From positions 62,001 to 126,000 of the IMG/VR virus record IMGVR_UViG_3300044712_002668: a DNA stretch of 64,000 nucleotides. One strand, 5' to 3'. Positions 22,353 to 54,191 of the stretch are shown here, one piece after another. The notes below the pieces were generated by a model, which was not told where the DNA came from, did no database searches, and was given only the letters and a program-made list of their open reading frames with translations. A program made the translations under genes and the position numbers. Within the stretch, counting starts at the first letter, position 1, and each line of letters opens with the position of its first letter.

Positions 22353-22437
22353 GCATATCCGCACATATATTTTAGACCGGTTCTTGTTAATACAACACGT
22401 AATAAGTACACATAAGAATAGATTAGGAGATTTTACT

Positions 22438-24921
22438 ATGGCCAGCAATATTCCAGGCGCAAGCGGTGCAGTACCAGGCGTTTATTTAGAAGCTCAAACA
22501 ATTCAACGTGGTATCAGCGTTCCGATTGGTAGTAGATTTGGTGTCATAATTGGCGAAGGGTTACGTGAAGAAGTTCTCGTATCAAATGCCAATGGTGGAG
22601 GAAGAGATGGATTCAATTCCACTTTCACATCAACCAAAGGAGCAAATGGTAGGTACTTTTTACTAGGCAAGGGCACAGATGTTGTAGCCCCTGTTATTCA
22701 AAATAGAAGTGTGCTATACAGGGATGGAATTCCTGTTACCCTAATTGAACAAACCATTGATCCAAACACTTCATTTGACAAGCGTTTTGGAGCAAGACTT
22801 GATCCAGCAACTGGACAAATCGAATTGCAAAAAGCCTCCTTTGTAGATCAGGGAGGATCTTATTTTGCAACCGGAGCTACCAATGTTGGTACTGGTGTAA
22901 TTTCAAATTTGACTCTTGCTAATACGGATGCAATTGCAGAAACCTGGTCTATTCGCTGCACAAGTGTACGTCGTGATGGTTATGGAAATCCAATTGATGG
23001 GTATGCAAAGTTTGTTGTTAGAGGCTCTGTTTCTGGTGTTATCCTTGATGGATATGGCAATCAGATTACATGGCAATCCAATGGTGTAATAACAAGCAAC
23101 GGTACTTTGTCCTTCTCTATCTCTGAGGGTGGTATTGCATTCCATGAAGGTGATTATTTCACTATTCAGATTGCTGGTGGTGGTCTTACAATAGGCGAGA
23201 CTTTATCAGCGGAATATATTTCAGAAATTGGATTGAATGCTCCAGCGTTTTATACATCAATGAATGATATCGCTGGAAAGTTTGGCTCTCCAAGTCTAAC
23301 CAATAGATTATCATTAGCGGCTCAGTTGGCATTTGATAATGGACCTCCTGGAGTGTTTGCAATTCAAGCAAAACCAGCGGTACCACGTAGATTGTCATAC
23401 AGTCTTGTAACATCTGCATCTGGATATGCCACAGCCGATGATTTGACATTTGCTCTACCATTATTGGTAACTCCAGATACAAATTCTGATATCCACTTCT
23501 TTGTAACCAATCCAACTACAAAGCTTGAAACACAGATTATACCAAATAAGGTTACATTCTATGATCCAACCATAACTTCAAATCCAAGTGGGTTTATATT
23601 TGGACAAACATATTCATACACAGTGGTTCTTGAACCTTCTGTTCAGAAATCAGGAACAGACGGTGTCTTGACTCCAACTGGAGCTTATCTTGGAGGATAC
23701 AGCGCTCAATTGGCAAGCTCATCTGTTACATTCAACATGGATGACTTGGAGTTGACAAGAAGTGTCAAGATTTATGATTCTGTCAATGGAAACAATGGTA
23801 CATTCAGTGTTATCAGCGTATCAAACGGAAAGATAAACATATATAGTGCAACACCATTTGGTACAGCAGAAACCGGAGTACGCTTCCAGGTTTTGGATTC
23901 AAGTGTCAGCAGCTCACGTATCTTGTTTACCTCTGACCTGGCTTTGACTCTAGGAGCTTCTCTTCGCTGTACATTAGTAGACAGCAAGGATGCTGATTTT
24001 TATGATGCAGGATGGGAGTTGGCTTATACAGCAGCCGAGCGCATTGATGTTGATATGGTTATCCCAGTACCAAGTCAGACAATTTCAGCAATCTTCCAGA
24101 ACGGTAAGGTTCACGTTGAGACAATGAGTAACATTGAAAACAAGCGTGAGCGTATCTTGATGATTGGAGCAATCAATGGGTTGTTACCAACAGCCGTGAC
24201 AGGTGATGTATTGGCTGCGGTTGAGGATGTTGGAATTCTGGAAGGAATTCAAGGAGATTCTGTTACTGAGATTCTTGCAGGTAATATTGAAGACCTGGCG
24301 AACTATGATGTACAGAATGCATATGGTGATAGCTACAGAGTAGTTTATTTCTATCCGGATCAGATTGTAGTCAACATTGCGGGTCAGAATACAATAGTTG
24401 ATGGCTTCTTCATGGCAGCGGCTGCAATGGGATACTTCTCAGGTAGCTTGCAGACAGCAGAGCCTTTGACCAACAAGACAATCGCAGGGTTCTCAATTAG
24501 TAACACCAGGACATTCTCTCCAACCGTTACCAAGAGCCTGGTTAATGCTGGAATTACTTTGGTAACACAGGCAGCGGGTGGTGGAAGAGTTATCTGGGGC
24601 AAGACAACAACCACCAGTGGTCAGCCAGAGGAAGAAGAGATTAGCATTGTATTCTGCAGGGATGCAATCTCCAAGGCTTTGAGAACTGGATTCCAACCTT
24701 ATATTGGACATGCAGAAACTCCAACCTTGCCAGTAACCTTGCAAAACACTGCTGCATCACTTTGTACAGCATTCATTACACAGAGATTGATTTCAGCTTA
24801 TAATGGACTTACTGTTGGAAGAGATCCTGTAGAGCCAAGACAATGGAATATCTCGTTGAATGTACAACCAATTTATCCAGTCAATTGGATATACATCAAG
24901 GTTAATGTAGGACTTATATAA
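22438..24921 (+). CDS. Tail sheath protein
   Basis: N-terminal PGVY; C-terminal HVETMSN..ER, EPLTNKTIAGF, LVNAGITLV, EEISIV, QPIYPVNWIYI; AGGAG RBS before ATG 22438. Confidence 0.88.
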   Translation: MASNIPGASGAVPGVYLEAQTIQRGISVPIGSRFGVIIGEGLREEVLVSNANGGGRDGFNSTFTSTKGANGRYFLLGKGTDVVAPVIQNRSVLYRDGIPVTLIEQTIDPNTSFDKRFGARLDPATGQIELQKASFVDQGGSYFATGATNVGTGVISNLTLANTDAIAETWSIRCTSVRRDGYGNPIDGYAKFVVRGSVSGVILDGYGNQITWQSNGVITSNGTLSFSISEGGIAFHEGDYFTIQIAGGGLTIGETLSAEYISEIGLNAPAFYTSMNDIAGKFGSPSLTNRLSLAAQLAFDNGPPGVFAIQAKPAVPRRLSYSLVTSASGYATADDLTFALPLLVTPDTNSDIHFFVTNPTTKLETQIIPNKVTFYDPTITSNPSGFIFGQTYSYTVVLEPSVQKSGTDGVLTPTGAYLGGYSAQLASSSVTFNMDDLELTRSVKIYDSVNGNNGTFSVISVSNGKINIYSATPFGTAETGVRFQVLDSSVSSSRILFTSDLALTLGASLRCTLVDSKDADFYDAGWELAYTAAERIDVDMVIPVPSQTISAIFQNGKVHVETMSNIENKRERILMIGAINGLLPTAVTGDVLAAVEDVGILEGIQGDSVTEILAGNIEDLANYDVQNAYGDSYRVVYFYPDQIVVNIAGQNTIVDGFFMAAAAMGYFSGSLQTAEPLTNKTIAGFSISNTRTFSPTVTKSLVNAGITLVTQAAGGGRVIWGKTTTTSGQPEEEEISIVFCRDAISKALRTGFQPYIGHAETPTLPVTLQNTAASLCTAFITQRLISAYNGLTVGRDPVEPRQWNISLNVQPIYPVNWIYIKVNVGLI

Positions 24922-29873: not shown

Positions 29874-32800
29874 ATGGGTTTTCTATCCGCTCTAAGTAAT
29901 GCAATAAACGATCAATTCGGTGTAGGTGAAAATACTACACATTCATTAGATCAGAATGGGGTTCCGTATGGAGCTTTAGGAACTAACCGAGAAACCAATG
30001 TAGGGTTTGCTGACAGAATAGATAACACAGCAGAGAGAACATATCTTGAAAACGGGTTTGTAAGAAATATAAGACCAAGAATAAGAGAGGTTTTATTTCA
30101 ACAACCAGATATTACAGTAGTATTTAAAAAGAGACTTTTTTCTTCATTAGCAACAAATACAAGACAAGATGTAATGGAAGAAAAAGAAAGAATCTTTCTT
30201 GCAGCTTCAAAAAGATTATTTCAAAATAAATGTAGAGTCATTTCTGCTTATGAAAAACTGACCAAAGTAGAACAGGTTGTAAAAGAATCCAAGCAATTCA
30301 ATACATATCTAGCTCCAATGATATTGAACGCAGTAGATACCATTAATTTAATGGGAATACCATTTGATGCAGATGTAAAAATTGCAATTGACAAGTTACG
30401 CAAAATAATGTCATATTCTGATCCTGGTGAGGTATCAAACTGGACTACCAATGATTGGGATTCTGTTTTTAACGATAAGCTTGGTGAGGGGCCTGGTACT
30501 TTTGAGCTTACAAACATAAGCGGATTCTCTTCCAATGTTGGATTGGATTGGGCATCTGGAAGTGCAAGTTTGACAATCGAAGATCCATACAATCTGATGA
30601 CAATTACTGAATCAGATATTGATCAGGCTTTATCAGATGTAGCCAACCCATTCAAAAGCCTCAGGTTTGGTAAGTTTACAGAAATTCAATTGAATAATAC
30701 CATTGCTGATTTGAAAGAACAATTGGCGGTAAAACGTGGTGCCAGAAATGCAAGTCAAATTACATTTATGACTTCAGAGGGGACTTTCTTATCTAGTAGG
30801 GTTAGAGCCGTTGTAGATCAAATAGGTACAGAGGTTATTTTTCAATATTCTACAGGTGTACAGAATGCTTTGAAAGGTATTGAAGATGCTAAAGATGGAA
30901 CATGGCAGGCTTTCAATTCTTCATTTGATCTATTTACACCAGGAACCGTCAATATTGACGCCAACTTTATAGCCAAAAAAAGTGAAGCAAACTCTTCTAC
31001 ATACAAACTAACTTCAGATGAAGCTAAATTGTTTTCAAGCATCATATGTGCAATATATACTTTGTTTGGATTTCATGCTACATCACAAAAGCAAATATTA
31101 AAAACAAATAAAACTTTAAATTATCCAAGAAATAGAATGAGAATGATGTTTAATGGTAAGAACATTATTCAATCAATGGATGTTATAAATATCTTTTTGA
31201 CAACAAGAACCAGTGAGGATCAGAAGCTAACAAGTGACTTCAGAAGCGCCAGGACAACTGGAAGTGTTGGGTTCAATGTTGCTAGAAAATTTGATACCAT
31301 GCTCAAGAGTGTAAATGATGGTATTATAAATCTAACAGAATCATTTTCCTTTACAGGGGCAGCGTTTGCAGAAGATTACGAAAGAAAAGCCATAGTAGGA
31401 GAGAAGTTTCCTTTATGGTTATGGAACCTTTTCAGAAATGATATTACCAAACAATCCGCTGGTACGGCAGTTTTTGTTGGCTTGGTAAAGGATTGTAAAT
31501 CTACCTTTAGTGATGGTAAATATACTGTCTCTGTAAGCTGTGAAGATAATGCCAATTACTTTACAAAGGGTCAGATAAACTTCCAACCATCTCCTGATTT
31601 GTTTTATGCGCCATTGTATGATCCTTTGACGCCATTCAATGTATCTTTTGATGGTTCAACGGGTGTTGCTATTACAGATCCAAGTATGGGTGATATTCCT
31701 GATTTGCTACCTGAGAACAAGACTCTTATTTTGAGTGGTGCGGTAGCTTTCAAGGCTGGTCCACGAAAAGGTGAGATGGCTAATTTGAATTCTTATCGTC
31801 AAGGTTCAAATGAATCCGTTTTCAGTGATATCAAGAAGGTTTTGTATGATCCTGATGGATTGGTATATCGTTGGAAACAAGGCATTCAAACAATGACCTA
31901 TAGTGATAGGGCAAACCCTGCTTCCAGCACAGAGCATGAAAGAAGTGTGTTATTAACCAATAAACCTTTTGCAGGACAGGATATGATGAATGTCATATCT
32001 CTTCTAATTACAGGACAGGCATATAACCCTTATACTTTTTTGAAAGCGGCATTACAAAATGGAAATAGCCTGGCACAAACAGACCCGGCTACAGGACAGC
32101 CTGTAGCGATTTCTTATATTATCGGGCTCATGACCGATCTACAGAAGAACAACTCATTGTGGGGCAATTTTGTGCCATTCAAGAAGCTTGTAATGGATCC
32201 TTCACTTGAGAGTTTTATTACCAAAACTCAGATTGATCTTACTCAAAGCATAAACTCTTTAAAAACAGCTATGAGTGAAAGAGCATCTATAATGGATGAG
32301 ATTACCCTGCTATGCGGAAAACAATATACTATAGATCAGTTGTTCTCTAGTTCTGCTACTACTGGAATGACTCAAAATAAAATAAAAACATTTAAGCAAT
32401 ATGCCGATAAGATAAAAGACATTGATAAACAAATAGCAGCTTTATCACAAACTTACACTCAAACAATAAACGATCCTAATAAGTCTCCAAATAATTTGAA
32501 TATAACTGTAACTGGAGATTCTATAGATTTGAACCCAAATCTTGCGGACATCAACCCCAAGGATAATGAAGCGCAAAGGTCTATTAAGAAACTAGAGCTT
32601 AGAAAGAAGCTAGCACAATTGACATTGAGACGTTTATGGCAGGTAAGAGCCAATGAGGATCCTAATTTTTTCATAGTAGACGATCAGTATGATAACAATT
32701 TTGACTTGATGGCTTTTGAAAGGAAACTTGGAAAGATAGATGCAATTTTCAATAGTCAATTTGGAACTGTTGGAGATCAGATAAAGACGGTAAGTACAAT

Positions 32801-35096
32801 TTTAGGTTTTGAGATATTTGCGAATACTCAAGGTCACATTGAAGCTCGTCCTCCTCAGTATAATAAAGTTCCAAGCAGTGTGTTTTATAAAATGTTTCAG
32901 GACCGGGCTGCATATGGCATAAAGGTTTTTCCAAGCTTTCTTGAAAACCTTTATTACAACCAAATGCATTCATTGATTGATCAGGTTTGTATTGTTGAAG
33001 ATGAGATTCGTTTGAGAGGAGCTGCTCTTGGAAAGTATACCGATTCTGATATCGCAAAAAACAATATCGGTGCAAATTTTGCATTTGTTACAGATGAAAA
33101 CACTGGAAAACTAACCAGCATACCTTCTGCGGTTTTGAATGCTTACCCTGATATGCAAGATCAGTTGTATGATAAAAAACTAGAGTCTCAGGGTAGTAGC
33201 GTAAATAAAGAAATGGATGCTGTAATCAAAGGATTGAAGTCTTTTTCACAAAGCATTTCAACACAGGCCAAAATACAGAACCTGTTCAATATAACACAAC
33301 AAAATGTGTTAGGAAAAGACGTAACTGTTTATGAAAGTCAAAGCATTTCCAGGGTTGATATGATTCGGGCAAGGATAATGGAAAAGACCAATCGTTCTGC
33401 TCCAACCCTATCTGAATTGTTTTCTAACGATAATTTCAGAACAAGTGGAAATATAAGCCAGACGGATCGTTTGAACATTATTCAACAAATGTCCAATTTC
33501 ATTTCCCAAAGACAAACGCTTTTGAAGTCATTGACCAATGTTATCAAAAACCTTCAAGAAGGTTTGGCAGTAAACAAACCAGAGCTTTCTGTAAATCCTA
33601 TGAACCAAGGTTTGGGAGCTATTGGAGGTGCTTTGACTGCAAACAGTGAAACAAGCGCAGATAAAGCTGCTCTAAATCCTTGGCTTTATCGTAAAACTGG
33701 AATTCCAGAACCATTATCACATATGATAGAGTATGAGGATAACGATGATTATGGAATAAATGCCGGTAAAAGGTTTGTTATAAAGGGGAATCGAATAATA
33801 AGCATGACAATAGAAGAGCATGCTCCTGACTATACAATGGTAGGGGTTAAGGGATTGATAGGAGAGGGTTTTATTCCTGGGCCTGGAAGTTTGAATACAG
33901 TTCTGGATGGAAACGTTATTCACACAGCATATGCTGTAGATTATGACTTATGGTATATGTATGGATTCAGGGCATCAAATACTATAGAGATACCATTCTT
34001 TAGTGATCCTGACTCTCAATGTGCTCCATATGCTTATTCATTATTACTAAAGGCAAGAGAGAATATTTTAATAGGTTCAGTAGAGGTTAATGGTTATAAT
34101 GAATTCTATCAACCAGGCGATGTTGTATACATTGAAGATAGGAACTTGTTATTTTATGTAAAGAATGTCTCTCATAATTTGAGTTATGGAAACGTCACTA
34201 CAACATTGACACTGACTTATGGACATTCTCCTGGAGAGTATATACCAAACATGTTGGATGTTGTTGGAAAGATTATGTACAATGCCCGTGGTTACCATGG
34301 ACAGTTGGGTAGGACTGCAAGAGCACCTACCCTGGGAGCTGCAAGATCGATGGGGGCCGTATCTTTACAAAACAGACATAACTCTGCTTTGAACGCGATA
34401 GAGAACAATGCAGTTGAAAGCTTTTTACAATCAAATCAAGATATTATGGATTACCTTTTCAAAGGCCCGATAGGAGAGCGAAATAAAGGTGTTCTGGCAA
34501 ACACTCTTGTAGCTATTAGTGGGGCTTATAATCAAACTGGATATAATAGATTTAAAACAAGAATAAGATTAGTATTTTATACTGATACAGAAGATCAATT
34601 TAGTACGTATAGTGTTTGTAAAGAAATAAAAAAATGGCTTATAACACCAGGTCAATATTCAAATCAATCTAATCAATTTATTAAACAACCAAATAAACTT
34701 GGAATTAATCCTGATGATATTATCATAGATCAAATTGCTTTGAGTACACAAAAAGTAATTAGAAAAGAACCTGCATTATCTGTTGTTCCATATGAATATC
34801 CTTTTCAAACAGCATCGCCAGCAGCTTGCAATATTACAAGGTTAATAACTGACAATAGTGCAAAGCAAGTTACACCAGATCAGTTCCGTCAATATCTTGA
34901 ACAGAATGTTGTTGATATATTTGTTGTATACAATACACCGGAGCAAGTACCAATAACAGCAAATAATACCAACAGCCAAGCCGGTCAAAATTCAGCAGCC
35001 GCTGTAAACTCAGCAACATCTAGAACTGGAACCAGTAGTAGTTCTGGTACCAATGCTGCTCTTGGTGGAATCAGGAGATCATCTAATGGCAACTAA
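29874..35096 (+). CDS. Baseplate hub protein (gp27/gpD-like) with large insertions
   Basis: FEIFANTQGHIEARPPQY and YQPGDVVYI...YVKNVSHNLSYG..TTTLTLTYG hub-type C-terminus; synteny. Confidence 0.6.
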   Translation: MGFLSALSNAINDQFGVGENTTHSLDQNGVPYGALGTNRETNVGFADRIDNTAERTYLENGFVRNIRPRIREVLFQQPDITVVFKKRLFSSLATNTRQDVMEEKERIFLAASKRLFQNKCRVISAYEKLTKVEQVVKESKQFNTYLAPMILNAVDTINLMGIPFDADVKIAIDKLRKIMSYSDPGEVSNWTTNDWDSVFNDKLGEGPGTFELTNISGFSSNVGLDWASGSASLTIEDPYNLMTITESDIDQALSDVANPFKSLRFGKFTEIQLNNTIADLKEQLAVKRGARNASQITFMTSEGTFLSSRVRAVVDQIGTEVIFQYSTGVQNALKGIEDAKDGTWQAFNSSFDLFTPGTVNIDANFIAKKSEANSSTYKLTSDEAKLFSSIICAIYTLFGFHATSQKQILKTNKTLNYPRNRMRMMFNGKNIIQSMDVINIFLTTRTSEDQKLTSDFRSARTTGSVGFNVARKFDTMLKSVNDGIINLTESFSFTGAAFAEDYERKAIVGEKFPLWLWNLFRNDITKQSAGTAVFVGLVKDCKSTFSDGKYTVSVSCEDNANYFTKGQINFQPSPDLFYAPLYDPLTPFNVSFDGSTGVAITDPSMGDIPDLLPENKTLILSGAVAFKAGPRKGEMANLNSYRQGSNESVFSDIKKVLYDPDGLVYRWKQGIQTMTYSDRANPASSTEHERSVLLTNKPFAGQDMMNVISLLITGQAYNPYTFLKAALQNGNSLAQTDPATGQPVAISYIIGLMTDLQKNNSLWGNFVPFKKLVMDPSLESFITKTQIDLTQSINSLKTAMSERASIMDEITLLCGKQYTIDQLFSSSATTGMTQNKIKTFKQYADKIKDIDKQIAALSQTYTQTINDPNKSPNNLNITVTGDSIDLNPNLADINPKDNEAQRSIKKLELRKKLAQLTLRRLWQVRANEDPNFFIVDDQYDNNFDLMAFERKLGKIDAIFNSQFGTVGDQIKTVSTILGFEIFANTQGHIEARPPQYNKVPSSVFYKMFQDRAAYGIKVFPSFLENLYYNQMHSLIDQVCIVEDEIRLRGAALGKYTDSDIAKNNIGANFAFVTDENTGKLTSIPSAVLNAYPDMQDQLYDKKLESQGSSVNKEMDAVIKGLKSFSQSISTQAKIQNLFNITQQNVLGKDVTVYESQSISRVDMIRARIMEKTNRSAPTLSELFSNDNFRTSGNISQTDRLNIIQQMSNFISQRQTLLKSLTNVIKNLQEGLAVNKPELSVNPMNQGLGAIGGALTANSETSADKAALNPWLYRKTGIPEPLSHMIEYEDNDDYGINAGKRFVIKGNRIISMTIEEHAPDYTMVGVKGLIGEGFIPGPGSLNTVLDGNVIHTAYAVDYDLWYMYGFRASNTIEIPFFSDPDSQCAPYAYSLLLKARENILIGSVEVNGYNEFYQPGDVVYIEDRNLLFYVKNVSHNLSYGNVTTTLTLTYGHSPGEYIPNMLDVVGKIMYNARGYHGQLGRTARAPTLGAARSMGAVSLQNRHNSALNAIENNAVESFLQSNQDIMDYLFKGPIGERNKGVLANTLVAISGAYNQTGYNRFKTRIRLVFYTDTEDQFSTYSVCKEIKKWLITPGQYSNQSNQFIKQPNKLGINPDDIIIDQIALSTQKVIRKEPALSVVPYEYPFQTASPAACNITRLITDNSAKQVTPDQFRQYLEQNVVDIFVVYNTPEQVPITANNTNSQAGQNSAAAVNSATSRTGTSSSSGTNAALGGIRRSSNGN

Positions 35097-40831: not shown

Positions 40832-41263
40832 ATGTCTTTTGATCTTAAATTGGAAAATGGAGATTTGCTTGTAAAGTCAGGGGACTTGCAAACCGTTGAA
40901 AATAATGATAAATTAGTTCAAGATATCTTGAAAATTTTAAGCACCCCTATGGGTGGTAACCCATTCTTTCCTGCATATGGCTCTCCAATCAATTCCGCTA
41001 TGATTGGAAATTATTACGATATAGATTTTGTAAGGAATGTAACTACACAACAGATAAGAACAACGTTGGAGAGATTGCAGCAATTACAAGCGGATCAATT
41101 AAGGAACAACCAGATAGTAACACCTTTTGAACAGCTTGCTGCGATACAAAGTGTAAGTGTAAACAATATACCTCAAGACCCTAGATACTATGCTATATCC
41201 TTGACCGTTATTTCAAAGGCTTTTCGTAGGGTTGATATTCCTTTTATGGTAGTTTCTGCTTAA
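40832..41263 (+). CDS. Baseplate wedge / sheath initiator (gp25-like)
   Basis: DLKLENGDL, KLVQDILKILSTPMG.NPFFPAYGS. Confidence 0.82.
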   Translation: MSFDLKLENGDLLVKSGDLQTVENNDKLVQDILKILSTPMGGNPFFPAYGSPINSAMIGNYYDIDFVRNVTTQQIRTTLERLQQLQADQLRNNQIVTPFEQLAAIQSVSVNNIPQDPRYYAISLTVISKAFRRVDIPFMVVSA

Positions 41264-44300: not shown

Positions 44301-44567
44301 GTGACATCTGGATCTGAGAATTCAAGTACAACAATACAACAAAACGTATATGATGCAATTGTTAGTTCATTGAATGCTACTCAGCTTGGAACAACTGTAG
44401 ATAGCTCAGACCTTATAAATACAGCATATACAATCACAGGGGTTGATAGAGTAAGAGTTATATATTTCAATAAGACTGGAAATACAGGAAGTGTATTAAG
44501 TATTTCGGCAAACAGTAATCAATATCTTCAAGCTGGAAGCATTACAATTAATATGGAAAGCAGATAA
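41331..44567 (+). CDS. Baseplate J-like wedge protein (gp6/gp47 family) with insertions
   Basis: GSDLDALASNFGAVR, FNGGSAPESD..FKNR, GTSAGY, GGKVDIY. Confidence 0.82.
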   Translation: MVRIRSVNDITLNIIDFYRTAQTQLDLKPGQVARDLLVDGPAVQISNLYDELYRVQDAQSLAISLGSDLDALASNFGAVRGQGSTSTGTAIVTFNAIDADIPINQGELVIASNGASFSVNTSFTVSVVNKNTYRAVASKYRADLDFVGISDQYAVEVAVTATTTGTTSNIAKYNLNTTTIAGASGVTNAAAFNGGSAPESDTVFKNRLLGIFSGSNTGTSAGYKDIVLSDPEVVDALVVGPGDPLMTRDGTVTVENPDGSYTIVSEGTGGKVDIYAYGFRLVQNVDSYIYYDKSNQNDTTNAANNFVLGQIASDANKTVSKKRVDDIQNGTVPNQPVINIISVSGSLSGSNFVQQTTNSLGVSSGNYTLLKDTGAYAGSPWGFDSLHWTDDHIRDYVENETKGSFNGQDPLGFTDVSSIPSVKQDIQIINENSVVSSTDRTSIQLAHYPVSNVSRVFNQTTGERYVISNQNPDGSGSLNETGRIIISGNTLPAVSDILQVDYIWNYSYDPSFDYDNKVTSDNPRTVTDSIDWGYSNAVRREESIVVTSGSQKVVQVTHPISSVISVNTFTGETATVTLVSDRLAIFVGSLVLNVISIIRNSDGAELFHTNAENGSFSGFTVFLPTDTVAKIGDSVSVRYNASDIFTVSGLSGSFSSNTITISSASTVTAGTIVECNYIANITQIVPTITLPSLPVIKSGNYFTTGTQTIGVQPVTNIYSSNVVQKNLRTAPTHLRLAITGSISPGVITVTGSTVLGIFDGVFVVTSSGLTHNLSTLVKSALGLNSNQSVPSTVSVIKLVTFKKVDTDNNLNVLSTIHTYDINGYYLKDNSYVKSESVADSTLSTTQVKLPSTSGNTANSPIIGDKIQVTFYIVKTSDSENISFGKSGSLYTNKTFSYVDSIAISSGFTSTESQSATITVYPQNQPAQGSRYSATYDYIAPKQNERITINYNNNGVISDNTFAIERARPIGHDVLVKQAIGVSVDATLAVVVTSGSENSSTTIQQNVYDAIVSSLNATQLGTTVDSSDLINTAYTITGVDRVRVIYFNKTGNTGSVLSISANSNQYLQAGSITINMESR

Positions 44568-47500
44568 TGTCAAATCTAAACATAGTAAATATTGTACCAA
44601 CCAACAGTAGGACTATAAACGCAAAATTTTCGGATCCTGTAACTCCTTTATTGGGTACCGAAAACGTTGTTGTAACTTCTACTGTTTCAGGGGTTCCAGA
44701 TCCTAAAGTATTAGGTATTTATGTAAATGAAAATATCGTTCTGGTGTATACCCTTCCATTGACACCTTATGCAAAATATACAATAACCTTTCAATCAACT
44801 CCAAATTTAAAAGTACAAGATAGTTCTGGAACAAAGTTTCTTCTTGAAGATGGAATTTACAACGTATCAAAATTCATAGGTCCTGAGGACCCTGACAATC
44901 CGATACGTGATATCTTGGTTTCAAATCTTCAACAAAATGTTTATGATCTAACTCCTGGTACATTGGTAAGAACAATACTTGATCAATTGGCTACCAATTT
45001 TTCAAAGGTAAACCACGATATATACCAGGCCAAGAATGAAAACTATCTTACCTTGCTTATTCAAGATGAACAAAAAACTCGTGGTTTTGGCCCATGGGAC
45101 AGGTTGAACCAAGAAGGCGCTTATGAGGTTATAAGGGTTGGTTTAACAGAAACAAATGCCAATTTGCCTGGAGCTATAACTTTTACAAGCTTTCCAAGAG
45201 ATCCTATTACCTTACAAGGTGTAACAGTTCAAAATGAAACCCTTACATTCGGAAGCGGATCTGGCACATATGATAAACAAACTCTTACAGTAAAAAATAA
45301 TCCTGTAACCAGATTGACATCAGTTCAAATTAATTACTCTAACGGAAGTTCTTTTGTATATAATATAAACCAATATGGTTATAGAATATTGAATGCAAAG
45401 TATGATTCTACATATGGACGACCATATTCTTTATTGAGTGACAATCAATTTGAACTCAGTGATGATTTGTTTGATTTGCCAACCTTTGTTGCTCCTGGTG
45501 GTAATGACACTATAGTTGTAACATATGAGTATAAACTTTTAAGTAGAATTGTTACAGAGGATTCTGTTACGGTAACTCAGGTTCTATCGGCTGTACGTGA
45601 GCCGGCACCAGCAGAAGCTACCTTATTCTCAATTAAGAATGCTCCGGTTGTTACAAGTGCTGGTAAAGATGTTACAAGTGCTGGTATCCAGTTTTTGGAT
45701 CCTTATTCTACCACACCTTTTAGAAGTACGCACCCAGCGTTTTTATATGAAATCCCTTATAGGGAAGGTGGTTTGCCAAAGCTTCCTGGCCAATATGCCG
45801 TTGACTATACTACTGGCAGAGTTTTTGTTTATGGAGCCCAAAACAATGATGGTACAGGGTTCTTCCCACCAGCAATGACATATTATTACAAAGATACCTT
45901 TGTAAGCAAACTAGACTATACATATGTACCAGATCAGTATGATTTGGTAGCATCTCCTTTAAGAGAATTGATTGGACAAACAGCAACCATTTCATTCAAC
46001 TATGATCAGGTGCTTACACCTGGCGTAGACTATGATGCAACTGTTCACCAAGAAGTTCTTAATGAAAGAATTGGAAACAGACTTATCAGTTCAAATACTT
46101 TGGTGGTAGCTAACGCTCCTGTAACCGATGTTTTTAGAATATATAATGAAACAACTGGTGAAATATATAATGCTACCAGATTCAGTTTTAACAAGATATC
46201 ATTTTCATATAACAAATCACCTAGAATATTTGACACTACAAGAGAGCGCGCATCATTTCAGGATGTAACTAGTGAATCATTGGTTTTGGCAAAAGAATTT
46301 CTAAGCACTAGTGGTTATAGAATATTCAAGTTTGTTCTGAATAACAACAAGATAGTATCTGGCACTGAAGACCTGATAGGTAGCAGCTATAATACAAGTG
46401 CGTTTTTCAGTAGACAGGATGTGTTTGCTCAAGAGGTATACTATGACTCACAAGAGCTTACTGAAACTATAAACGTAGCAAGATTGGTTATCGGTCAATA
46501 TCAGATCAATTACCAAGATGGTGTTGTGTATGTTGCTGTTTCTCCAGCCCAAACACCAAGCGTTGGAACGATATCCTATAAAAAACTAGCTGTATCTCCA
46601 GCAAACCCACATGTTATATCTGTAAGCAATATATACTATAGTATAAATCAAAACACAGGTGTATCAAAACAGCTTGATTACAGTGGTTTTGATGATGGTG
46701 TCATATACCCATCTGAATATGATTTATCAGATGAAAGGTTTACAAATAAAAATACGTTAGCCCCTTACATTTATGACACTGGAACTATTACTGTTACCGA
46801 TGATATCAAAGCATTACGTGGCGTATATGATGCGTATGATTTGAATAACAGTGTAATACCAACAAACTTTGCAGAGAACGCTACCTTTAGCGCAAATGTT
46901 ATTACACTATCTCCTCAGGGGATTATGAAGTCTGGACAATTTATTGTTAGCGGCGCTCTAACAATTACCGTTCCATATTTATCTCCTGGTATTGTATTGG
47001 GTTCGGTATTCAGCGTAATACGTATCACTGACAATCAGCAATTAGTAGCTGGTGCAAGTGTAAATACAAATACCATTACACTTTCCCCTAGCAGTGGTGT
47101 TGTAGCTGGTGATGTAGTAAATGTAATATACTATGTTGTTATGAATGGGGCGGCTACCCCGGTAGTTGATTATAATAAAGGTGAATATTATATTGACTAT
47201 ACATATCTTGCAGATGAAATATTGGTAAGCTATGAATACGGTGACAACGTAATAGACTTCAGACAAAATGAGACGGTTTCTCCTGGTAGCACATACTATG
47301 TTTCTTATAGAGTAGGTGCTCTTAGAAATGCATTGTTAAATAACTTTGCAGCATTGATAAAGATCCCAGAGTTACAAGCTTTCGACTCTTATCTTGATAG
47401 GGAGGTATATAGAGACATTCTCATAGGGGCTTTACAAACCTTCACTAAGGGTCCAACAAACCCAGCTTTCAAACAACTTGTTTCAAGTGTTACAAAGATA

Positions 47501-50500
47501 GAACCACAGATTACAGAAGATCTGTTCAATGCCTGGTCTTTGGGTGTAAGTTATTTGAAGCCAAATGGAACAAGTGTTTCAGGAACACCACAACTTACAG
47601 TTGGCAAATATGATCAAGGGTTAGCTATCAGAAAAACAGGGGATGCAGTATCTTTTCCAGTATCAAACAATTTGAGATTGGAAGAGGGTACCTTGGAAAT
47701 GTGGGTTATACCTGATTGGGATGGTGTAGACAATGATGCTTCAATTACTTTCTCTGTATTGAAAAACTCTCTTCCTATAACATCAAGCTCTGTCTTTATA
47801 GGATCTAGAAGTTACAATCCTGAAATCATTGATGGATCTTTTACGCTAAACAGAAACGATAGCAATAGTCCTGAAGGTTTGCCTTCTGCTATATTTTTGA
47901 ATAATAGCGGATTGTTTATATATTATGATAAAGATAATAAACAATGGAAGATGCTGGCTAAAGAACCAATGGGTTCGGCTGCATCCTATACAGGAAGCTT
48001 GACATCAACTGGTGAATTTTATAATGTTGGATTTATTCCTGGTGTTGGTGAGCTTGATGATGTTTTGAGATCATCATCTCAAACGTTGGATTTTGAATTC
48101 AACTTCAGCCCATCAGATCCTCAGGATGGATATGATGGATATGTTGATGGGTATGTAACAGGATATAAATTTGATGGTATTCAGTTGATGTCTGATAATG
48201 ACCATTATATCTTTGACTTTGGTAAGACAGAGAATACTAATAGATTCTCGCTGTACAAAGATGGTCGTGGATACATTGTATTTGAGGTATGGGACCGTGG
48301 AGGGTTCAGTAATGGAGTAAAACCTGAGAGGCGAAACGTATATCGTGTTAGTTCAGATATAAGGGATTGGACGGCAGGATCATCTCACCATGTTGCCGTG
48401 TCATGGATACTGAACTCATCTGATAGAAGAGATGAGATGCATTTATATATTGATGGATTTGAAACTCCAAATATTATGCGTTATGGTAATATACCTGATA
48501 TTGCCTCTACAAACAGATTCCGCACTATTGTTCCAGAACAGGTATTGGGAATAGTGCCAAAAAATACTATTGCAGGAAATGACTTACAGATATTTACAGG
48601 ATCAAATGTAGTAGAATCAGCCTCTGTTGATTTTCAAGCTGGTGGAATTTTGCCAGGTGATTTGATAGAGTTACAGGAACAAGGTTTAGGTACATATACC
48701 ATAACATATGTTTCTGGTAATCAGTTAACTATCAGCTCTATAATGCCGTTTACATTATCAGATGCAAGGTTCTCAGTAAACCCAACAAGCTTTGTGGTAT
48801 ATACAGAAATTGATATTTATAAAAACATTGCGGTATTTATCTCTACCGGTCCTAATGACCCTGGTACAGAAATCCCAGGAGTAAGGGCTAACATTCCTGG
48901 TTACAGCATTGAAAGAAATACTCTTAATCAAAGAATTCTTAAAATATTAGGAGATGCAAATGCTGGTGACACCGTATTGATCAAGCCATTGGGATTGAAT
49001 CATCGTAGATGCAGAGAAAGATTATATCTATGGAATGATCAGTCTATAATAAAAACTGCATTACCTCCACCTATCAACTTGGATGATGTTGTATTGAGAC
49101 CGGTACAATTGCCACTTACTCCGATAGGGCCAAGTAATGCAACCATTATAGGGATGGATTTTGATATAACATTTACAAGTGTTAGCCAGCCTAGCAACCC
49201 TCTTGAGGGAAGGCATTTGGAAGTAAGGATCACTGGAGAGAATACATCCTTTACAACTCCTACAGTGGTTACTATAAATGGTACTTCAACTGGTGGTGTA
49301 ACAGAGACACTTACATTTACATCTGCAGTAAAACAAAGTACTTCTTATAAATGGCAAACCATTACAAGTGTTCATGTAGTAACAACCCCAATTGTGCTGA
49401 CACAAAATTGTGTATCCATAGAAATAAAGGAATTGTACTCTGTTACAAACCCTGATGGAAATACTATTTATCCAGTAATCAGGTTTGCTTTCAAAACTCA
49501 AGGTGGTCTATCCCTTTCTGGATCAGGTACAACACTGGTTACAGATGTCAATGGATACTTTGCAGACTCTGATGTTGGTAACTTGTTAGAAATAACCGCG
49601 CCACCAGCGGTGGCAGGGTTGTATGAGATAGTTCAAAAAATTGATAACTACAATGTTGTATTGAATATACCTACACCTACCTCATTTACAAATGGAAAAT
49701 ATTCAATATACAATATAAGCATTGGTAGAAGTGGTTTTCAGAATGGTTTCATGTTTTTTGAAAGAGCTGGTTTTACCAATGTACCATTCTATATTCCTCA
49801 GGGGTATTTTGATATAGACTTTGCGGCATGGCTGGAGGTACCATTTGATCCTATAGATCAAACCGCTTATATTGGAAACGATATAACATTACAAAAACCA
49901 GCCAATGCTGTAATAGATGAATTTAGAATTTTGAATTATCAACTCACAGATACAAGGGTAGGTGAAACGGTTGATGTTCAATCAATAACTACAAATGCTG
50001 TTGAGTTTGCTCCATTCACAAATGATCCTCAAACACTTACATTATTACATTTTGAACAATTACCACCTATAAATGATACAGAATTTTACATCTATGCTAC
50101 AAAGGAGTATGTACAATCTGCAACCAGTGTAAATTCAAAATTTGGAACATGTATTGTTATTAAAGACAAGGGATTGGTATTTGATAATGATGGAACCTTG
50201 AATACCAGCAGTGATGGTATGGTTGAATTCTGGGTAAGCCCAAGATTTGATACATATAATGACCCTATACCAAGAGTATATTTTGATGCTGCAGCGTCTA
50301 TTGTTGAAAACAACACCAGTTTAACAAAAGAAATTGTAAAGGTATCTGGAAAGATAAACAAAGTACTATCTGTCAAAATGGCAAATGATAGTGTAACAGA
50401 TTATTATGGTGGTGGTGTAATAGGCCCAGATCGTCAAACCATATACTTGAACAAACCTTTACCATTCCAGCAAAGCCCTGTTGTCATCACTTATGTTTCT

Positions 50501-51217
50501 ACTGGAACCCAGGGTGATAGGCTGACGATATATAAAGATAGGGATGGTTTTATAAATCTATCCGTTCTGGCTGGTGGAAGTTTATTTGAAACCCGTCAAC
50601 CTGTATTCTGGCCAAGGGATACATGGCACCGTGTCAGGGCTTCATTCAAGTTTAACCGTTCAGATCATAAAGATGAGATAAGATTGTTTGTGGATGGTGA
50701 AGAGAAGGGTATTTTGATGTTCGGCGCTCCAAACGTTCTATTCGGAGAAGGAACAAGCTTTGGACAAAACTATACTGGTGTTACGAATCAAAAACTTGTT
50801 GCTGATATAAACTTTCTTGACACTATCAATCAGTTTTCTATTGGTCAAGACTTTACAGGAAACTATGGGGCTCAGGCTAGGTTTGATAATATAAAAATAA
50901 GTAACAGAAGTATTGATCCTCTTTTGGTTGGAAACCAACCTAAAGATGTGTATTTCAATACAAATTCTGATTTCATATATCCATCAATCTCTGATGCGTT
51001 CACTACCTTCTTGATGGATTTTGATCAATTGGTACAAAAAAATACAGATTTTGCTATGGTAATAGATCCCGTCTCTGGTATTTTCAATTTTACCCTGAAT
51101 ATCATTGATTCTTTTGACATAGTGATAGATAATTCTAAGGTCCAGAATATCCTTGAAGCTATGATAAAGGTTCTGAAGCCAGCGGTATCAAAGGTTCAAA
51201 TTAACTATATAAAGTGA
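44567..51217 (+). CDS. Very large baseplate wedge protein (gpI/gp7-like) with LamG/concanavalin-like domains
   Basis: YRDILIGALQTFTKGPT wedge motif; EGTLEMWV, HHVAVSW, LYIDG, IDEFRI, WHRVRASF LamG patterns; C-terminal IKVLKPA. Confidence 0.65.
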   Translation: MSNLNIVNIVPTNSRTINAKFSDPVTPLLGTENVVVTSTVSGVPDPKVLGIYVNENIVLVYTLPLTPYAKYTITFQSTPNLKVQDSSGTKFLLEDGIYNVSKFIGPEDPDNPIRDILVSNLQQNVYDLTPGTLVRTILDQLATNFSKVNHDIYQAKNENYLTLLIQDEQKTRGFGPWDRLNQEGAYEVIRVGLTETNANLPGAITFTSFPRDPITLQGVTVQNETLTFGSGSGTYDKQTLTVKNNPVTRLTSVQINYSNGSSFVYNINQYGYRILNAKYDSTYGRPYSLLSDNQFELSDDLFDLPTFVAPGGNDTIVVTYEYKLLSRIVTEDSVTVTQVLSAVREPAPAEATLFSIKNAPVVTSAGKDVTSAGIQFLDPYSTTPFRSTHPAFLYEIPYREGGLPKLPGQYAVDYTTGRVFVYGAQNNDGTGFFPPAMTYYYKDTFVSKLDYTYVPDQYDLVASPLRELIGQTATISFNYDQVLTPGVDYDATVHQEVLNERIGNRLISSNTLVVANAPVTDVFRIYNETTGEIYNATRFSFNKISFSYNKSPRIFDTTRERASFQDVTSESLVLAKEFLSTSGYRIFKFVLNNNKIVSGTEDLIGSSYNTSAFFSRQDVFAQEVYYDSQELTETINVARLVIGQYQINYQDGVVYVAVSPAQTPSVGTISYKKLAVSPANPHVISVSNIYYSINQNTGVSKQLDYSGFDDGVIYPSEYDLSDERFTNKNTLAPYIYDTGTITVTDDIKALRGVYDAYDLNNSVIPTNFAENATFSANVITLSPQGIMKSGQFIVSGALTITVPYLSPGIVLGSVFSVIRITDNQQLVAGASVNTNTITLSPSSGVVAGDVVNVIYYVVMNGAATPVVDYNKGEYYIDYTYLADEILVSYEYGDNVIDFRQNETVSPGSTYYVSYRVGALRNALLNNFAALIKIPELQAFDSYLDREVYRDILIGALQTFTKGPTNPAFKQLVSSVTKIEPQITEDLFNAWSLGVSYLKPNGTSVSGTPQLTVGKYDQGLAIRKTGDAVSFPVSNNLRLEEGTLEMWVIPDWDGVDNDASITFSVLKNSLPITSSSVFIGSRSYNPEIIDGSFTLNRNDSNSPEGLPSAIFLNNSGLFIYYDKDNKQWKMLAKEPMGSAASYTGSLTSTGEFYNVGFIPGVGELDDVLRSSSQTLDFEFNFSPSDPQDGYDGYVDGYVTGYKFDGIQLMSDNDHYIFDFGKTENTNRFSLYKDGRGYIVFEVWDRGGFSNGVKPERRNVYRVSSDIRDWTAGSSHHVAVSWILNSSDRRDEMHLYIDGFETPNIMRYGNIPDIASTNRFRTIVPEQVLGIVPKNTIAGNDLQIFTGSNVVESASVDFQAGGILPGDLIELQEQGLGTYTITYVSGNQLTISSIMPFTLSDARFSVNPTSFVVYTEIDIYKNIAVFISTGPNDPGTEIPGVRANIPGYSIERNTLNQRILKILGDANAGDTVLIKPLGLNHRRCRERLYLWNDQSIIKTALPPPINLDDVVLRPVQLPLTPIGPSNATIIGMDFDITFTSVSQPSNPLEGRHLEVRITGENTSFTTPTVVTINGTSTGGVTETLTFTSAVKQSTSYKWQTITSVHVVTTPIVLTQNCVSIEIKELYSVTNPDGNTIYPVIRFAFKTQGGLSLSGSGTTLVTDVNGYFADSDVGNLLEITAPPAVAGLYEIVQKIDNYNVVLNIPTPTSFTNGKYSIYNISIGRSGFQNGFMFFERAGFTNVPFYIPQGYFDIDFAAWLEVPFDPIDQTAYIGNDITLQKPANAVIDEFRILNYQLTDTRVGETVDVQSITTNAVEFAPFTNDPQTLTLLHFEQLPPINDTEFYIYATKEYVQSATSVNSKFGTCIVIKDKGLVFDNDGTLNTSSDGMVEFWVSPRFDTYNDPIPRVYFDAAASIVENNTSLTKEIVKVSGKINKVLSVKMANDSVTDYYGGGVIGPDRQTIYLNKPLPFQQSPVVITYVSTGTQGDRLTIYKDRDGFINLSVLAGGSLFETRQPVFWPRDTWHRVRASFKFNRSDHKDEIRLFVDGEEKGILMFGAPNVLFGEGTSFGQNYTGVTNQKLVADINFLDTINQFSIGQDFTGNYGAQARFDNIKISNRSIDPLLVGNQPKDVYFNTNSDFIYPSISDAFTTFLMDFDQLVQKNTDFAMVIDPVSGIFNFTLNIIDSFDIVIDNSKVQNILEAMIKVLKPAVSKVQINYIK

Positions 51218-51221
51218 TGAT

Positions 51222-54191
51222 ATGATGACAACACGAAACTCAGTCTCTATTATACAAAATCGTTGGTATGACGGTCAACGCGTTGATCAGCAGGATTTAG
51301 TTACCGATCAAACCAGGAATGTGGGTACAGATGCGGCGATTATAAATAATCACTTTGGCTCAGGTGTTCTACCTAATGCAAGTTTACCTGTAACAGTTTT
51401 CGATACAGATAACCTTCTTCCAGATCAGGTAGCATTGATAGCTTCTGGTGATTTTGACGGTACAGGTTTAGAACCTATTGGTCAACCAAGTGATACCAGC
51501 AATGGTAATCAGTTATCTGTTGAGTTGATGGATTCAGATTTAAACGGACCATCTACTGCATTTGGTAGAATGAGTACAAAGGTACTTATAATAGGTCTTG
51601 ACTTTCAAGGATCTCTTCAGTACGAAAGGTTTTACTTCTATAAGAAAGAAAAACAAGTTTCTCAAAAACATTATGCAAAAGTGTTATGTGTTTTCTTCAA
51701 TGATTTTATAGGTAACACAAACTGTTCAAGGGATTTGGGCGGCAGGGTTGTAATCAAAGAAGCTAACAGTTTTGAGTTGTCCAGGGATCCTGTCATGACA
51801 GCTCAGGATACCCAACCAAACATATTTTTTCGTGATTTCAAGATATCAACATTTTCCGGTGGAACAAATCCTACGGTTACATTGTATCAAGCATTGCAGG
51901 CTGGTATAGGAAACCAATATTCAGTTGATGGTTTAAATATTACCACCACCGCTCTTGAAAACATCTATTTGCCTTCTGGGGATGTAACTACAAAGATAGG
52001 GCAAAAATTTCTAGCTCTAACAAATAACATTCAAAAAATAAGCTTACTTTTAGGTGTTGACCAGGATACCACAACTACTACTGAACATTGGTTTGATTGG
52101 AGTGGAGAGCTTATTGTAAGTGTTTATGCCTTACAAACAACTGTTTCTTCACCAAGCGATCTTGTACCAACTTTAGCTATAGAGTTTGATCCGGCTGCAC
52201 AGCCAATTACTCAGTTCAGTTTGAATCAACAATCATTAAGGGATTTAGGTTATGTACTAAACAATGTTGCTCAACCTATAGATCTTGTTTTTAGTGCTTC
52301 CCCTCTGGGTAGTTCTACAAACTCTGTAATAACGGTTGGTCAATATTATGCGGTTGTTATTAACAGGGCAGGAGATGCAAGTACTGGTAGTATTTTTGCA
52401 GCAGCAGGGGCCACTTCAAACTCTGATACCCGTGTAAGCATCTACTCAGGATTATGGACAGATATACCACAAGAAAGCTTATGGTTTCAGGTATGGACAG
52501 ATGCTGCAAAAGTATCTGATGGACAGGGTTATGATTCTGGTAATGGTATTCAAATACCTAAAACAATACAGAACAGCAGTGGTGCCTATGTTGATTACTC
52601 ATTTGGTTTGAATCAATTTTCTGATACAGGGCATAACACTTTAAATACTGCAATTATAGAAGCTGTCTTGACTCAAAGTCAGCAAGAACAAGATGAAAGA
52701 ACTGGTAGTCCAGTTTATTCTAGACAGCAATATACACCATCACTTAGTTTTGTTACAAACTCAACGCTTCAAACAATCCAAGAAACTGGTAATCCTTTAA
52801 TCATTGGAAGTACAAGGGATACAAACCCTATTAGTAACTATTCTGTAACCGGAACCCAACCATATCCTGGTTTGGTTAAAGGAGATACCTATACCCTTGT
52901 AGCTCCAGATCCATCCGTAATAGCACAAAACCTTATAGGTAGCAAATTGATACCAAATGATGATTGTGCAGGTTTGGATTACCGTATTATGAAAGTGTCA
53001 ATCTGTACCGATGGGTATGGTGATGTAAATGGTGATGGGGTTATTGATGAAGCAGATGCCAATAGAGCTATTGCACTTATTGGCGAATCCCTTTCTTCAG
53101 CATCGACACAACAAAAAATTATTGATGGTTACATATCTACTCTTGAAATATTAAGAGCTGACGTTAATGGTAATGGTATTGTTGATGCTTATGATGCTCA
53201 GTTGATTGCATCATTCATTGCCAGAGATATTTCAACATTCCCATACGGAAGATCCTTTCAGCATGTTGAATTTCAGGTTCAACAGAGTATAGGAAGATAT
53301 GATGGATACTTTGATTGTGATGGGTATATCAGACTAGACGGTTATATTGGGCAGAACAAAATAGACCCTGCAAGTCTTGGTATTTATGCTCAAATTTATG
53401 ATGGGTATATTATACCACCACAAATGGATAAGGCAGATCCTGCTTGGACAACGGTACCATATGTACCTGTACCATTCCTGATTACACCTCAGGCATTCTG
53501 GCAAGATTATCAAGTTCAATTCAGTAGTGCTACAAGAATGGTACCTGCTGTATTTACATCTCAGAGCGGAGGCAGAGTATCAACCTCGACTGTTTGTACA
53601 AGCCCAAGCATAACTAGCTGTAGTAATGTTACTGATATTATAACACAGACAGATCCTGGTAAAAATGATATCTTTATTCCAGATAACTTGATTATAAGAG
53701 GAAACATTTTAAATGTTGATGGTACTTTTTATAAGCAAGATTTTGAGGTAAAGCATTTCGTCTTGGAGCTTCCACCAGAAGTATTCTCACAAGCATCTAT
53801 TGATGTTTTCCATAAATTGGTAGCAGATGCAGGGGATGGTTTTACATCTGCTGGATATCCTGCAATGAGATATAGTGATTGTACCACTGTAGGGTTGGAT
53901 GCTTTGATTTATAACAGACTTCGTTTTGGAGTATCTATTCAATCAATAGTACCCAACCTTGATGGTTATAGTGTCGCTGATGGTTATGGCGTAATTGTTG
54001 ATGACTTGATTGGTATATACATGGATCCTATTTATGGAATTATGACAATTACAGCAAAGGATCTTGACGAGGATTTGACCAAACCAAACTTGATTACAAA
54101 GATCGAGATTGTGGTGTATGCCAAGAAAGCTGGATGGCAAAATACTACTCAAATAATTCCACCAAATCAAATCATGGGACTTGTTACTTGA
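51222..54191 (+). CDS. Baseplate/fibre-attachment protein with a dockerin-like EF-hand pair and 8 DGY motifs
   Basis: N-terminal WYDGQRVDQQDL..DQ; GDVNGDGVIDEADA and ADVNGNGIVDAYDA. Confidence 0.55.
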   Translation: MMTTRNSVSIIQNRWYDGQRVDQQDLVTDQTRNVGTDAAIINNHFGSGVLPNASLPVTVFDTDNLLPDQVALIASGDFDGTGLEPIGQPSDTSNGNQLSVELMDSDLNGPSTAFGRMSTKVLIIGLDFQGSLQYERFYFYKKEKQVSQKHYAKVLCVFFNDFIGNTNCSRDLGGRVVIKEANSFELSRDPVMTAQDTQPNIFFRDFKISTFSGGTNPTVTLYQALQAGIGNQYSVDGLNITTTALENIYLPSGDVTTKIGQKFLALTNNIQKISLLLGVDQDTTTTTEHWFDWSGELIVSVYALQTTVSSPSDLVPTLAIEFDPAAQPITQFSLNQQSLRDLGYVLNNVAQPIDLVFSASPLGSSTNSVITVGQYYAVVINRAGDASTGSIFAAAGATSNSDTRVSIYSGLWTDIPQESLWFQVWTDAAKVSDGQGYDSGNGIQIPKTIQNSSGAYVDYSFGLNQFSDTGHNTLNTAIIEAVLTQSQQEQDERTGSPVYSRQQYTPSLSFVTNSTLQTIQETGNPLIIGSTRDTNPISNYSVTGTQPYPGLVKGDTYTLVAPDPSVIAQNLIGSKLIPNDDCAGLDYRIMKVSICTDGYGDVNGDGVIDEADANRAIALIGESLSSASTQQKIIDGYISTLEILRADVNGNGIVDAYDAQLIASFIARDISTFPYGRSFQHVEFQVQQSIGRYDGYFDCDGYIRLDGYIGQNKIDPASLGIYAQIYDGYIIPPQMDKADPAWTTVPYVPVPFLITPQAFWQDYQVQFSSATRMVPAVFTSQSGGRVSTSTVCTSPSITSCSNVTDIITQTDPGKNDIFIPDNLIIRGNILNVDGTFYKQDFEVKHFVLELPPEVFSQASIDVFHKLVADAGDGFTSAGYPAMRYSDCTTVGLDALIYNRLRFGVSIQSIVPNLDGYSVADGYGVIVDDLIGIYMDPIYGIMTITAKDLDEDLTKPNLITKIEIVVYAKKAGWQNTTQIIPPNQIMGLVT

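Follow-up and report, generated by a model that had tools for sequence, protein, structure and literature searches.

A length-variable Asp-Gly-Tyr array at a hairpin turn of a giant phage baseplate-module protein

An Asp-Gly-Tyr array in a 2216-residue protein

We analyzed a 64,000-nucleotide stretch of DNA (hereafter the window; positions 62,001 to 126,000 of IMG/VR virus record IMGVR_UViG_3300044712_002668) that carries a contractile-tail gene module, and focused on a short array of Asp-Gly-Tyr (DGY) units encoded in a giant open reading frame (ORF) of that module. The source record is 335,988 bp long, labeled as a provirus and 78% complete; coordinates below are window positions (1–64,000) unless given as record-based, and no alternative genetic code was needed. 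The protein in question, P0001, contains DGY only at residues 1187, 1190, and 1194, i.e., within a single 10-residue stretch of its 2216 residues, as the first-pass annotation of this DNA had observed. These three copies compare with 0.56 expected from composition. When the residues of the protein were shuffled 20,000 times, three DGY never fell within 10 residues. The clustering is real and not a product of chance. The array translates to DGYDGYVDGYVTGYKFDG, with a fourth unit, TGY, at residues 1197–1199 and GY-to-GY spacings of 3, 4, and 4, and Tandem Repeats Finder (TRF) reported two repeats in its DNA, a perfect 9-nucleotide (nt) repeat of 2.1 copies (GATGGATAT) and a 12-nt repeat of 2.0 copies (91%). 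The earlier annotation had placed the array at 48125–48174, which gives the correct start and ends 4 nt short of the final FDG (48178). The features discussed here are collected in Table 1.

Table 1. Positions of the array, its protein, and the surrounding tail-module genes in the window
Feature	Position	Strand	Basis
DGY array, DGY-DGY-V-DGY-V-TGY-KFDG, residues 1187–1204	48125..48178	+	ORF frame 44567–51217; TRF repeats
Whole length-variable segment, E-F-N-F ... F-D-G, residues 1177–1204 (28 residues)	48095..48178	+	Alignment, conserved anchors
Upstream flanking β-strand, residues 1173–1180 (model strand E174–181)	48083..48106	+	DSSP on model; conserved in alignment
Downstream flanking β-strand, residues 1200–1210 (model strand E201–211), near-invariant GYSFDGIxFMxD	48164..48196	+	Model, alignment
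First LamG/ConA-like module with β-rich insertion, residues 1000–1350 (modeled region)	47564..48616	+	PF13385; AlphaFold (AF2) model
Second, paralogous LamG-like module, residues 1845–2125, without DGY array	50099..50941	+	BLASTP E 5e-8; hhalign 97.9%
P0001 gene, 2216 residues, baseplate-module protein	44567..51217	+	Uninterrupted ORF
Baseplate_J/gp6-like wedge gene, 1078 residues	41331..44567	+	PF04865 E 8.5e-14; phrog_6 E 2.7e-30
gp25-like sheath initiator/baseplate wedge gene	40832..41263	+	phrog_2669 E 3.9e-13
Tail sheath gene, contractile-tail module	22384–24921		
Dockerin protein, 989 residues, downstream of P0001	51222..54191	+	PF00404 E 6.2e-9

The number of units varies between nearly invariant flanks

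A word-based search with residues 1000–1350 as the query returned 262 relatives, and the homologue counts given below come from the 120 that were listed. Nearly all of these are 2,200–2,300 residues long (four have 1,433–1,936), they are 50–62% identical to P0001 over residues 1000–1350, and they derive from contigs of up to 463 kb. In the full-length alignment, the segment between the two flanking strands ranges from 16 to 49 residues and holds 0–6 DGY (0–7 GY), while the flanks are almost invariant, reading D-V-L-R-S upstream and G-Y-S-F-D-G-I-x-F-M-x-D-D-x-H-Y-x-F-D-F-G downstream. The usual segment opens with L-DGY-D-x-x-S-P-DGY, continues with 0–5 units spaced by 0–5 residues, and ends in x-x-G-Y-S-F-D-G, the first and last units of the array being at least 90% conserved among the homologues. 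GY-to-GY spacings in the family run from 3 to 8, with 4 most frequent and 6 next. The SPSDPQ stretch that had been read as a Pro/Ser/Asp linker ahead of the array is indeed present in the window protein; since the homologues mostly have L-DGY-D-x-x-S-P at this place, it is a degenerate part of the DGY-rich segment and not a separate linker. A collagen-like Gly-X-Y triple helix was considered and rejected, because Gly follows no strict three-residue period in either the window array or the family.

The first-pass annotation had proposed that the array grew by multiplication of the motif and that DGY copy number in aligned homologues should reveal this, and the alignment bears it out. When a tree of the 120 homologues was computed with the loop columns removed, at least 52 changes in GY number were required, compared with 69.9 (minimum 60) for shuffled labels. 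The changes are thus fewer than under shuffling, yet still many, so that the number of units is heritable but very often changed. Nearly everywhere else in the P0001 family, length varies by a few residues at most, and in a sliding scan of 30-residue windows along P0001 the DGY segment ranked second in length variability (standard deviation (SD) 5.8, range 34).

The most length-variable spot of the family lies elsewhere, at 49097–49264 (residues 1511–1566; SD 16, range 85), where some homologues (P0042, P0049, P0055, P0012, P0015, and P0008) have 40–75 extra residues. These consist of ~9-residue units in tandem that follow the pattern L-(V/I)-D-D-x-G-N-(Y/F), and they represent a second amplification of short Asp/Gly/aromatic units within the same family. 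The window protein has the short form at this spot.

Predicted structure of the loop and a sister clade without the array

The array was originally described as lying in a LamG-like region, and this domain assignment is sound. Pfam Laminin_G_3 (PF13385) matched P0001 in three stretches with 33.3 bits against a gathering cut-off of 27.6 (E 6.3e-8), the best stretch being residues 1217–1308 (profile positions 39–110). An AlphaFold (AF2) model of residues 1000–1350, computed from a 120-sequence alignment, had a mean predicted local distance difference test score (pLDDT) of 86 and a predicted template modeling score (pTM) of 0.80. In an exhaustive comparison with VIA-align, this model scored highest against the HCN-type domain of NTNH (Z 10.7) and domain 4 of AbnA, which is arabinan-binding (Z 10.6), followed by the agrin (G2) and laminin LG domains (Z 9.4–9.3), with Z of 9.4–8.1 across the LG domains of agrin, laminin, and neurexin. 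The superpositions on BoNT/NTNH HCN, AbnA domain 4, agrin G2, and laminin LG had a root-mean-square deviation of 2.3–2.6 Å over 107–132 aligned residues, and the matches to ConA-like jelly rolls covered 105–141 residues scattered over model residues 1–307. With a profile match above the gathering score and a superposable jelly roll, the region belongs to the ConA-like lectin/glucanase superfamily, whose solved members among the structural relatives are mostly ligand- or glycan-binding (clostridial toxin HCN, AbnA domain 4, laminin/agrin/neurexin LG, and CBM40). A Foldseek search of the model against PDB and BFVD gave weak matches only (TM-scores 0.1–0.2), and a profile of the LamG region found nothing meaningful among PDB sequences.

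The first and second LamG modules of P0001 align with each other only in their C-terminal halves (hhalign probability 97.9%). This, together with the span of the Pfam match and the limited coverage of the VIA-align superpositions, indicates that the array sits in a β-rich insertion, ~160 residues long, that separates core strands of the first module. Within the model, the array is a coil joining the two flanking strands, with pLDDT values of 82 and 67 in its two blocks. P0099, the homologue with the longest segment (49 residues), was modeled likewise with the loop as coil, at pLDDT below 50 for model residues 190–214. Both models thus agree with the earlier description of the array as a loop, and they predict that long arrays are flexible and form no small folded element.

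A profile scan of IMG/VR recovered a sister clade (loci L050–L087; 34–38% identity) in which the equivalent strands are linked by a hairpin turn of 2–6 residues. Several of its members (L066, L067, L069, L073, L076, and L080) carry a single DGY at this turn, and L082 has a separate small expansion, G-D-Y-A-H-G-D-G-F-D-G-Y-G. A further locus, L071, is an intermediate sequence with D-A-Y units in place of D-G-Y. Because the sister clade has only a short turn at the site, the array is best seen as a clade-specific expansion of a hairpin turn that the fold does not need. The view that the array is no fold requirement is therefore upheld; the stretch is not invariant in the homologues, and it is coil in both models. 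The tight turn of the sister clade, a length variation of 33 residues with intact flanks, and the low-confidence coil in the models together lead us to infer that the DGY loop is probably exposed to solvent; it may lie at the periphery of the baseplate.

Codons, charge, and stability of the arrays

Length variation of 16–49 residues, a sister clade that does without the loop, and the low pLDDT of the loop could also reflect tolerated repeat drift, in which slippage of a GAT-GGN-TAY unit at a permissive hairpin tip would add and remove units without any function, D-G-Y staying simply because it is a good turn former. The perfect 9-nt tandem duplication in the window, and the fact that the second indel hot spot of the P0001 family also consists of short Asp/Gly/aromatic units, are consistent with such drift. 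The coding DNA of the arrays argues against it. Among 35 distinct arrays with available DNA (115 units), 9 of 80 adjacent DGY units were identical over their 9 nt, which is at the level expected if codons were chosen independently from the domain's own codon usage (~0.13). Synonymous sites of the units have thus reached saturation, yet the residues D, G, and Y are still in place. As for the duplication in the window, we rejected it as a sign of a recent event, since its codon combination is the commonest one (34 of the 115 units) and chance identity is likely.

The composition of the loop is biased as well. Asp stands directly before GY in 376 of 451 occurrences (83%), and Lys and Arg are excluded to the point of making up 1.3% of the loop versus 9.4% of the remaining domain. 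Net charge lies between -2 and -11, and longer loops are more negative (r = -0.64). Array length, moreover, is stable over short evolutionary distances: the 45 full-length members of 10 clusters with ≥90% identity show no difference in length within any cluster, only spacer substitutions, and length differs in 22% of pairs at 80–90% identity and in 71% at 70–80%. These observations, together with the strong conservation of the first and last units, run counter to drift, which we consider unlikely.

Since the protein probably interacts with the host and its gene contains short DNA units in tandem, the array also calls to mind a contingency hypervariable locus, or the target of a diversity-generating retroelement, that would switch host range within populations. 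Neither fits the data. A slipped-strand contingency repeat was rejected because the units are not identical in DNA beyond chance and array length is fixed within the ≥90% clusters. A retroelement target was rejected because the 335,988-bp record (78% complete) contained no match to the reverse transcriptase family RVT_1, and because the arrays vary by indels of whole units and not by adenine-directed substitution. We regard this explanation as largely refuted and very improbable. Taken together, the scrambled synonymous sites, the bias in Asp and charge, the stability within clusters, and the lack of a reverse transcriptase match speak against a slippage switch, a retroelement target, and purely neutral drift alike, and the codon, charge, and stability results point to selection on an acidic, tyrosine-rich composition. 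As far as their sequences tell, the arrays are of old origin and have been maintained through selection at the protein level, and are not slippage-driven switches.

The same acidic character raises the question of metal binding. LG and dockerin modules use Ca2+, and stacked Asp residues could bind Ca2+ or Mg2+ so that the array becomes rigid with metal and serves stability or triggering rather than host recognition. The increase in negative charge with length agrees with such a cation-binding structural loop, as do the solved LG relatives, which include Ca2+-dependent binders according to their structure entry titles, and the neighboring protein, in which a Ca2+-type dockerin adjoins DGY units of its own. 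The Pfam scan of P0001, on the other hand, reported no Ca2+-loop motif, and unit spacings of 3–8 residues are poorly suited to a defined coordination geometry. To our knowledge, the D-G-Y-x spacing is also unlike that of known Ca2+ loops (DxDxDG, EF-hand, and dockerin types). AlphaFold is blind to metals, and its coil prediction has to be read accordingly here. Overall, a role in cation binding seems rather improbable to us.

Gene neighborhood and the place of the protein in the tail

Genes for gp7/gpI-type wedge proteins usually follow directly after gp25-like and gp6/J-like genes, and the P0001 gene occupies exactly this position in the contractile-tail module, behind the gp25-like and Baseplate_J genes. 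The gp25-like gene was also matched by PF10934 (E 2.8e-7), at 31.0 bits slightly below the cut-off of 32.9 bits. The start codon of the P0001 gene shares 1 nt with the end of the Baseplate_J gene, which suggests that the two may be translationally coupled, and the order of J-like gene, giant protein gene, and dockerin protein gene recurs in the related contigs L002 and L004.

The first-pass annotation had called P0001 a giant wedge protein, and of this the gene position stands, whereas similarity in sequence or profile to gp7, gpI, or TssG does not. Pfam, PHROGs, and NCBIfam contained no match of P0001 to a gp7/gpI/TssG family (PHROGs and NCBIfam gave no family at all), a profile of the N-terminal 430 residues found nothing in PDB at E values up to 5, and an ESM Atlas feature search with the same 430 residues returned no usable match. 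We therefore dropped membership in the gp7/gpI/TssG family, with which only the gene position agrees; a wedge identity would follow from gene order alone. Neither tblastn nor megablast found a match to the P0001 gene among the 50,697 deposited phage genomes of INPHARED.

In the protein collection, the P0001 gene sits on a 454,833-bp contig. The provirus label of the source record contrasts with its appearance as part of a 455-kb phage contig. Three homologues of P0001 (P0004, P0021, and P0049) are filed under binned genomes named Clostridia bacterium, Candidatus Thorarchaeota, and Candidatus Pacearchaeota; these names most likely reflect phage contigs that were mis-binned into metagenome-assembled genomes. 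Two more ORFs of ~1,735 residues lie in the tail module on the + strand, at 13974–19178 and 29874–35096, and one of them may encode the tape measure. The former contains 5 DGY (0.53 expected).

DGY in other giant proteins of the record

DGY is enriched well beyond the array. In record ORFs of at least 150 residues, 80 copies were observed versus 14 expected from composition (a 5.7-fold excess) and 24.8 expected from dipeptides, and DGF, DGW, NGY, and EGY were not enriched genome-wide. Most copies occur in giant virion-type proteins, and a tandem array is found only in the 2,216-residue protein. Two ORFs outside the window (record positions 162321–167546 and 153456–158525; 1,741 and 1,689 residues) contain 11 and 10 DGY, respectively, within longer internal repeats: in one of the two, S/T-T-DGY-S-G recurs every 117 residues exactly (at 228, 345, 462, 579, and 696), and in the other, Y-A-T-x-x-W-V-DGY-F-x-x-W-G-L recurs about every 50 residues.

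The 989-residue protein encoded downstream of P0001 has 8 DGY (0.29 expected) and a type I dockerin with two DVNG(D/N)G loops at ~53016–53213. Right behind the dockerin, at ~53301–53345, lies a DGY-F-DC-DGY-IRL-DGY cluster, whose copy number and Cys are constant in the homologues from L002 and L004. The presence of a dockerin in a tail protein of a phage hints at one of two roles: the protein may plug into a partner that resembles cohesin, or it may bind a cohesin of the host.

This neighbor would be a candidate partner if the loop served a contact inside the virion, i.e., if it reached an adjoining baseplate or fiber subunit such as the dockerin protein and its length co-evolved with that subunit. 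The conserved order of the J-like, giant protein, and dockerin protein genes and the presence of DGY clusters in both P0001 and the dockerin protein are compatible with such a contact. The cluster in the dockerin protein is fixed in copy number, however, whereas the loop is variable, and the loop is wholly absent from the sister clade, so that we think an intra-virion role improbable.

A broader idea would join the two kinds of DGY occurrence. D-G-Y could be a short motif that the virion of this megaphage lineage uses specifically for adhesion or cation bridging. Several giant tail and fiber proteins would carry it at a fixed copy number, and the baseplate hairpin tip would carry it as an array of tunable valency. 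The number of units there would determine how avidly, or how far out, a polymer of the host envelope is bound, and would thereby contribute to host range. We offer this as speculation, and think it improbable.

A putative contact with the host envelope

The reading that we favor, tentatively and with slightly less than an even chance of being right, is that the array is a clade-specific hairpin expansion in a giant baseplate-module protein of ~400–460-kb phages that serves as a putative contact with the host envelope. Under this reading, evolution would have started from two strands joined by a short hairpin turn, which in some cases already read D-G-Y, and repeated D-G-Y units with 0–5 variable residues between them would then have been gained. 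The outcome would be a protruding, flexible, strongly acidic, and Tyr-studded loop of 16–49 residues, whose unit number shifts often between lineages and stays constant within them, and whose D-G-Y is held by selection at the protein level. Such a loop might act as a low-specificity, multivalent contact for a component of the host envelope, in line with the multivalent sites suggested in the first-pass annotation. Tyr would provide stacking and hydrogen bonding, Asp would form hydrogen bonds or bridge to the envelope through a cation, and Gly would keep the loop flexible; the length and valency of the loop would be adapted to the lineage of the host.

Length-variable loops rich in Tyr, Gly, Asp, and Ser are typical recognition surfaces, as in the third complementarity-determining region of antibody heavy chains (CDR-H3) and in synthetic antibodies built from a four-letter code. 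We favor a host-envelope target because the superfamily of the domain consists of modules that bind ligands and glycans, the Tyr/Gly/Asp composition is of this recognition type, the site is plastic in length, and the pattern is lineage-specific, which adaptation to hosts would lead one to expect. Several points weigh against it. The position of P0001 in the virion is deduced from gene order alone, and the exposure of the loop from topology. The sister clade lacks the loop, so that assembly, and perhaps infection as well, can evidently proceed without it. Finally, since DGY is enriched in other giant proteins in fixed contexts, it could simply be this lineage's favored motif for a turn followed by the start of a strand.

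Phages with genomes of 400–500 kb have come to light almost entirely through metagenomes, and host recognition by their very large baseplates is poorly charted. The DGY loop, as one of only two sites of repeated length change in an otherwise length-rigid protein of 2,216 residues, offers a concrete candidate for a host-interaction site, and the sister clade, which has no such loop, can serve as its natural control. The array also illustrates neatly how amplification of a β-turn motif can give rise to a new surface element.

Comparison with known systems

Neither "DGY repeat" nor "DGY motif" was found in the literature searched. We compared the array with systems that resemble it in gene position, fold, or composition; its nearest functional analogs, which are the gp38 segments, the LG/LNS loop inserts, and CDR-H3-like loops, are not homologous to it in the loop. 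By position, the closest are T4 gp7, P2 gpI, and TssG of the type VI secretion system, since the P0001 gene directly follows the gp25-like and Baseplate_J genes; as set out above, there is no detectable similarity to them in sequence or profile, and P0001 is twice the size of T4 gp7.

By fold, the LG/LNS domains of laminin G, neurexin, and agrin share the jelly-roll superfamily with the P0001 module. In LG/LNS domains, short loop inserts of variable length near the Ca2+ site tune ligand binding, and the titles of the matched LG structure entries mention both splice inserts and Ca2+. The variation in LG domains, however, is generated by alternative splicing within one organism, whereas that of the DGY loop comes from gain and loss of repeats between phage lineages, and the phage module carries an insertion of ~160 residues that LG domains do not have.

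By composition, the array resembles CDR-H3 and minimalist Tyr/Ser/Gly/Asp synthetic loops in being a flexible, length-variable loop on a β-sandwich that is dominated by Tyr, Gly, and Asp, a composition that gives versatile binding in CDR-H3-like loops. This is a functional analogy only, with neither homology nor somatic diversification, and the DGY loop is regularly periodic whereas CDR-H3 is irregular.

Among phage proteins, the gp38 adhesins of T2/T6/S16-type phages have hypervariable segments between glycine-rich motifs, and host specificity is ascribed to these segments (Trojet et al. 2011, PMC3157838). The likeness lies in a protein associated with the tail tip or baseplate in which a conserved scaffold frames short segments that vary in length and sequence between related phages. 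P0001 and gp38 are unrelated in sequence and family (a PHROGs search with P0001 yielded no match), and the repeats play opposite parts: the Gly-rich repeats of gp38 are the conserved scaffold, whereas the D-G-Y repeats of P0001 are themselves the variable-number element, set inside a LamG-type domain. Variable recognition-type loops on phage tail proteins are thus already known, and the DGY array adds an interesting detail to them and not a new mechanism.

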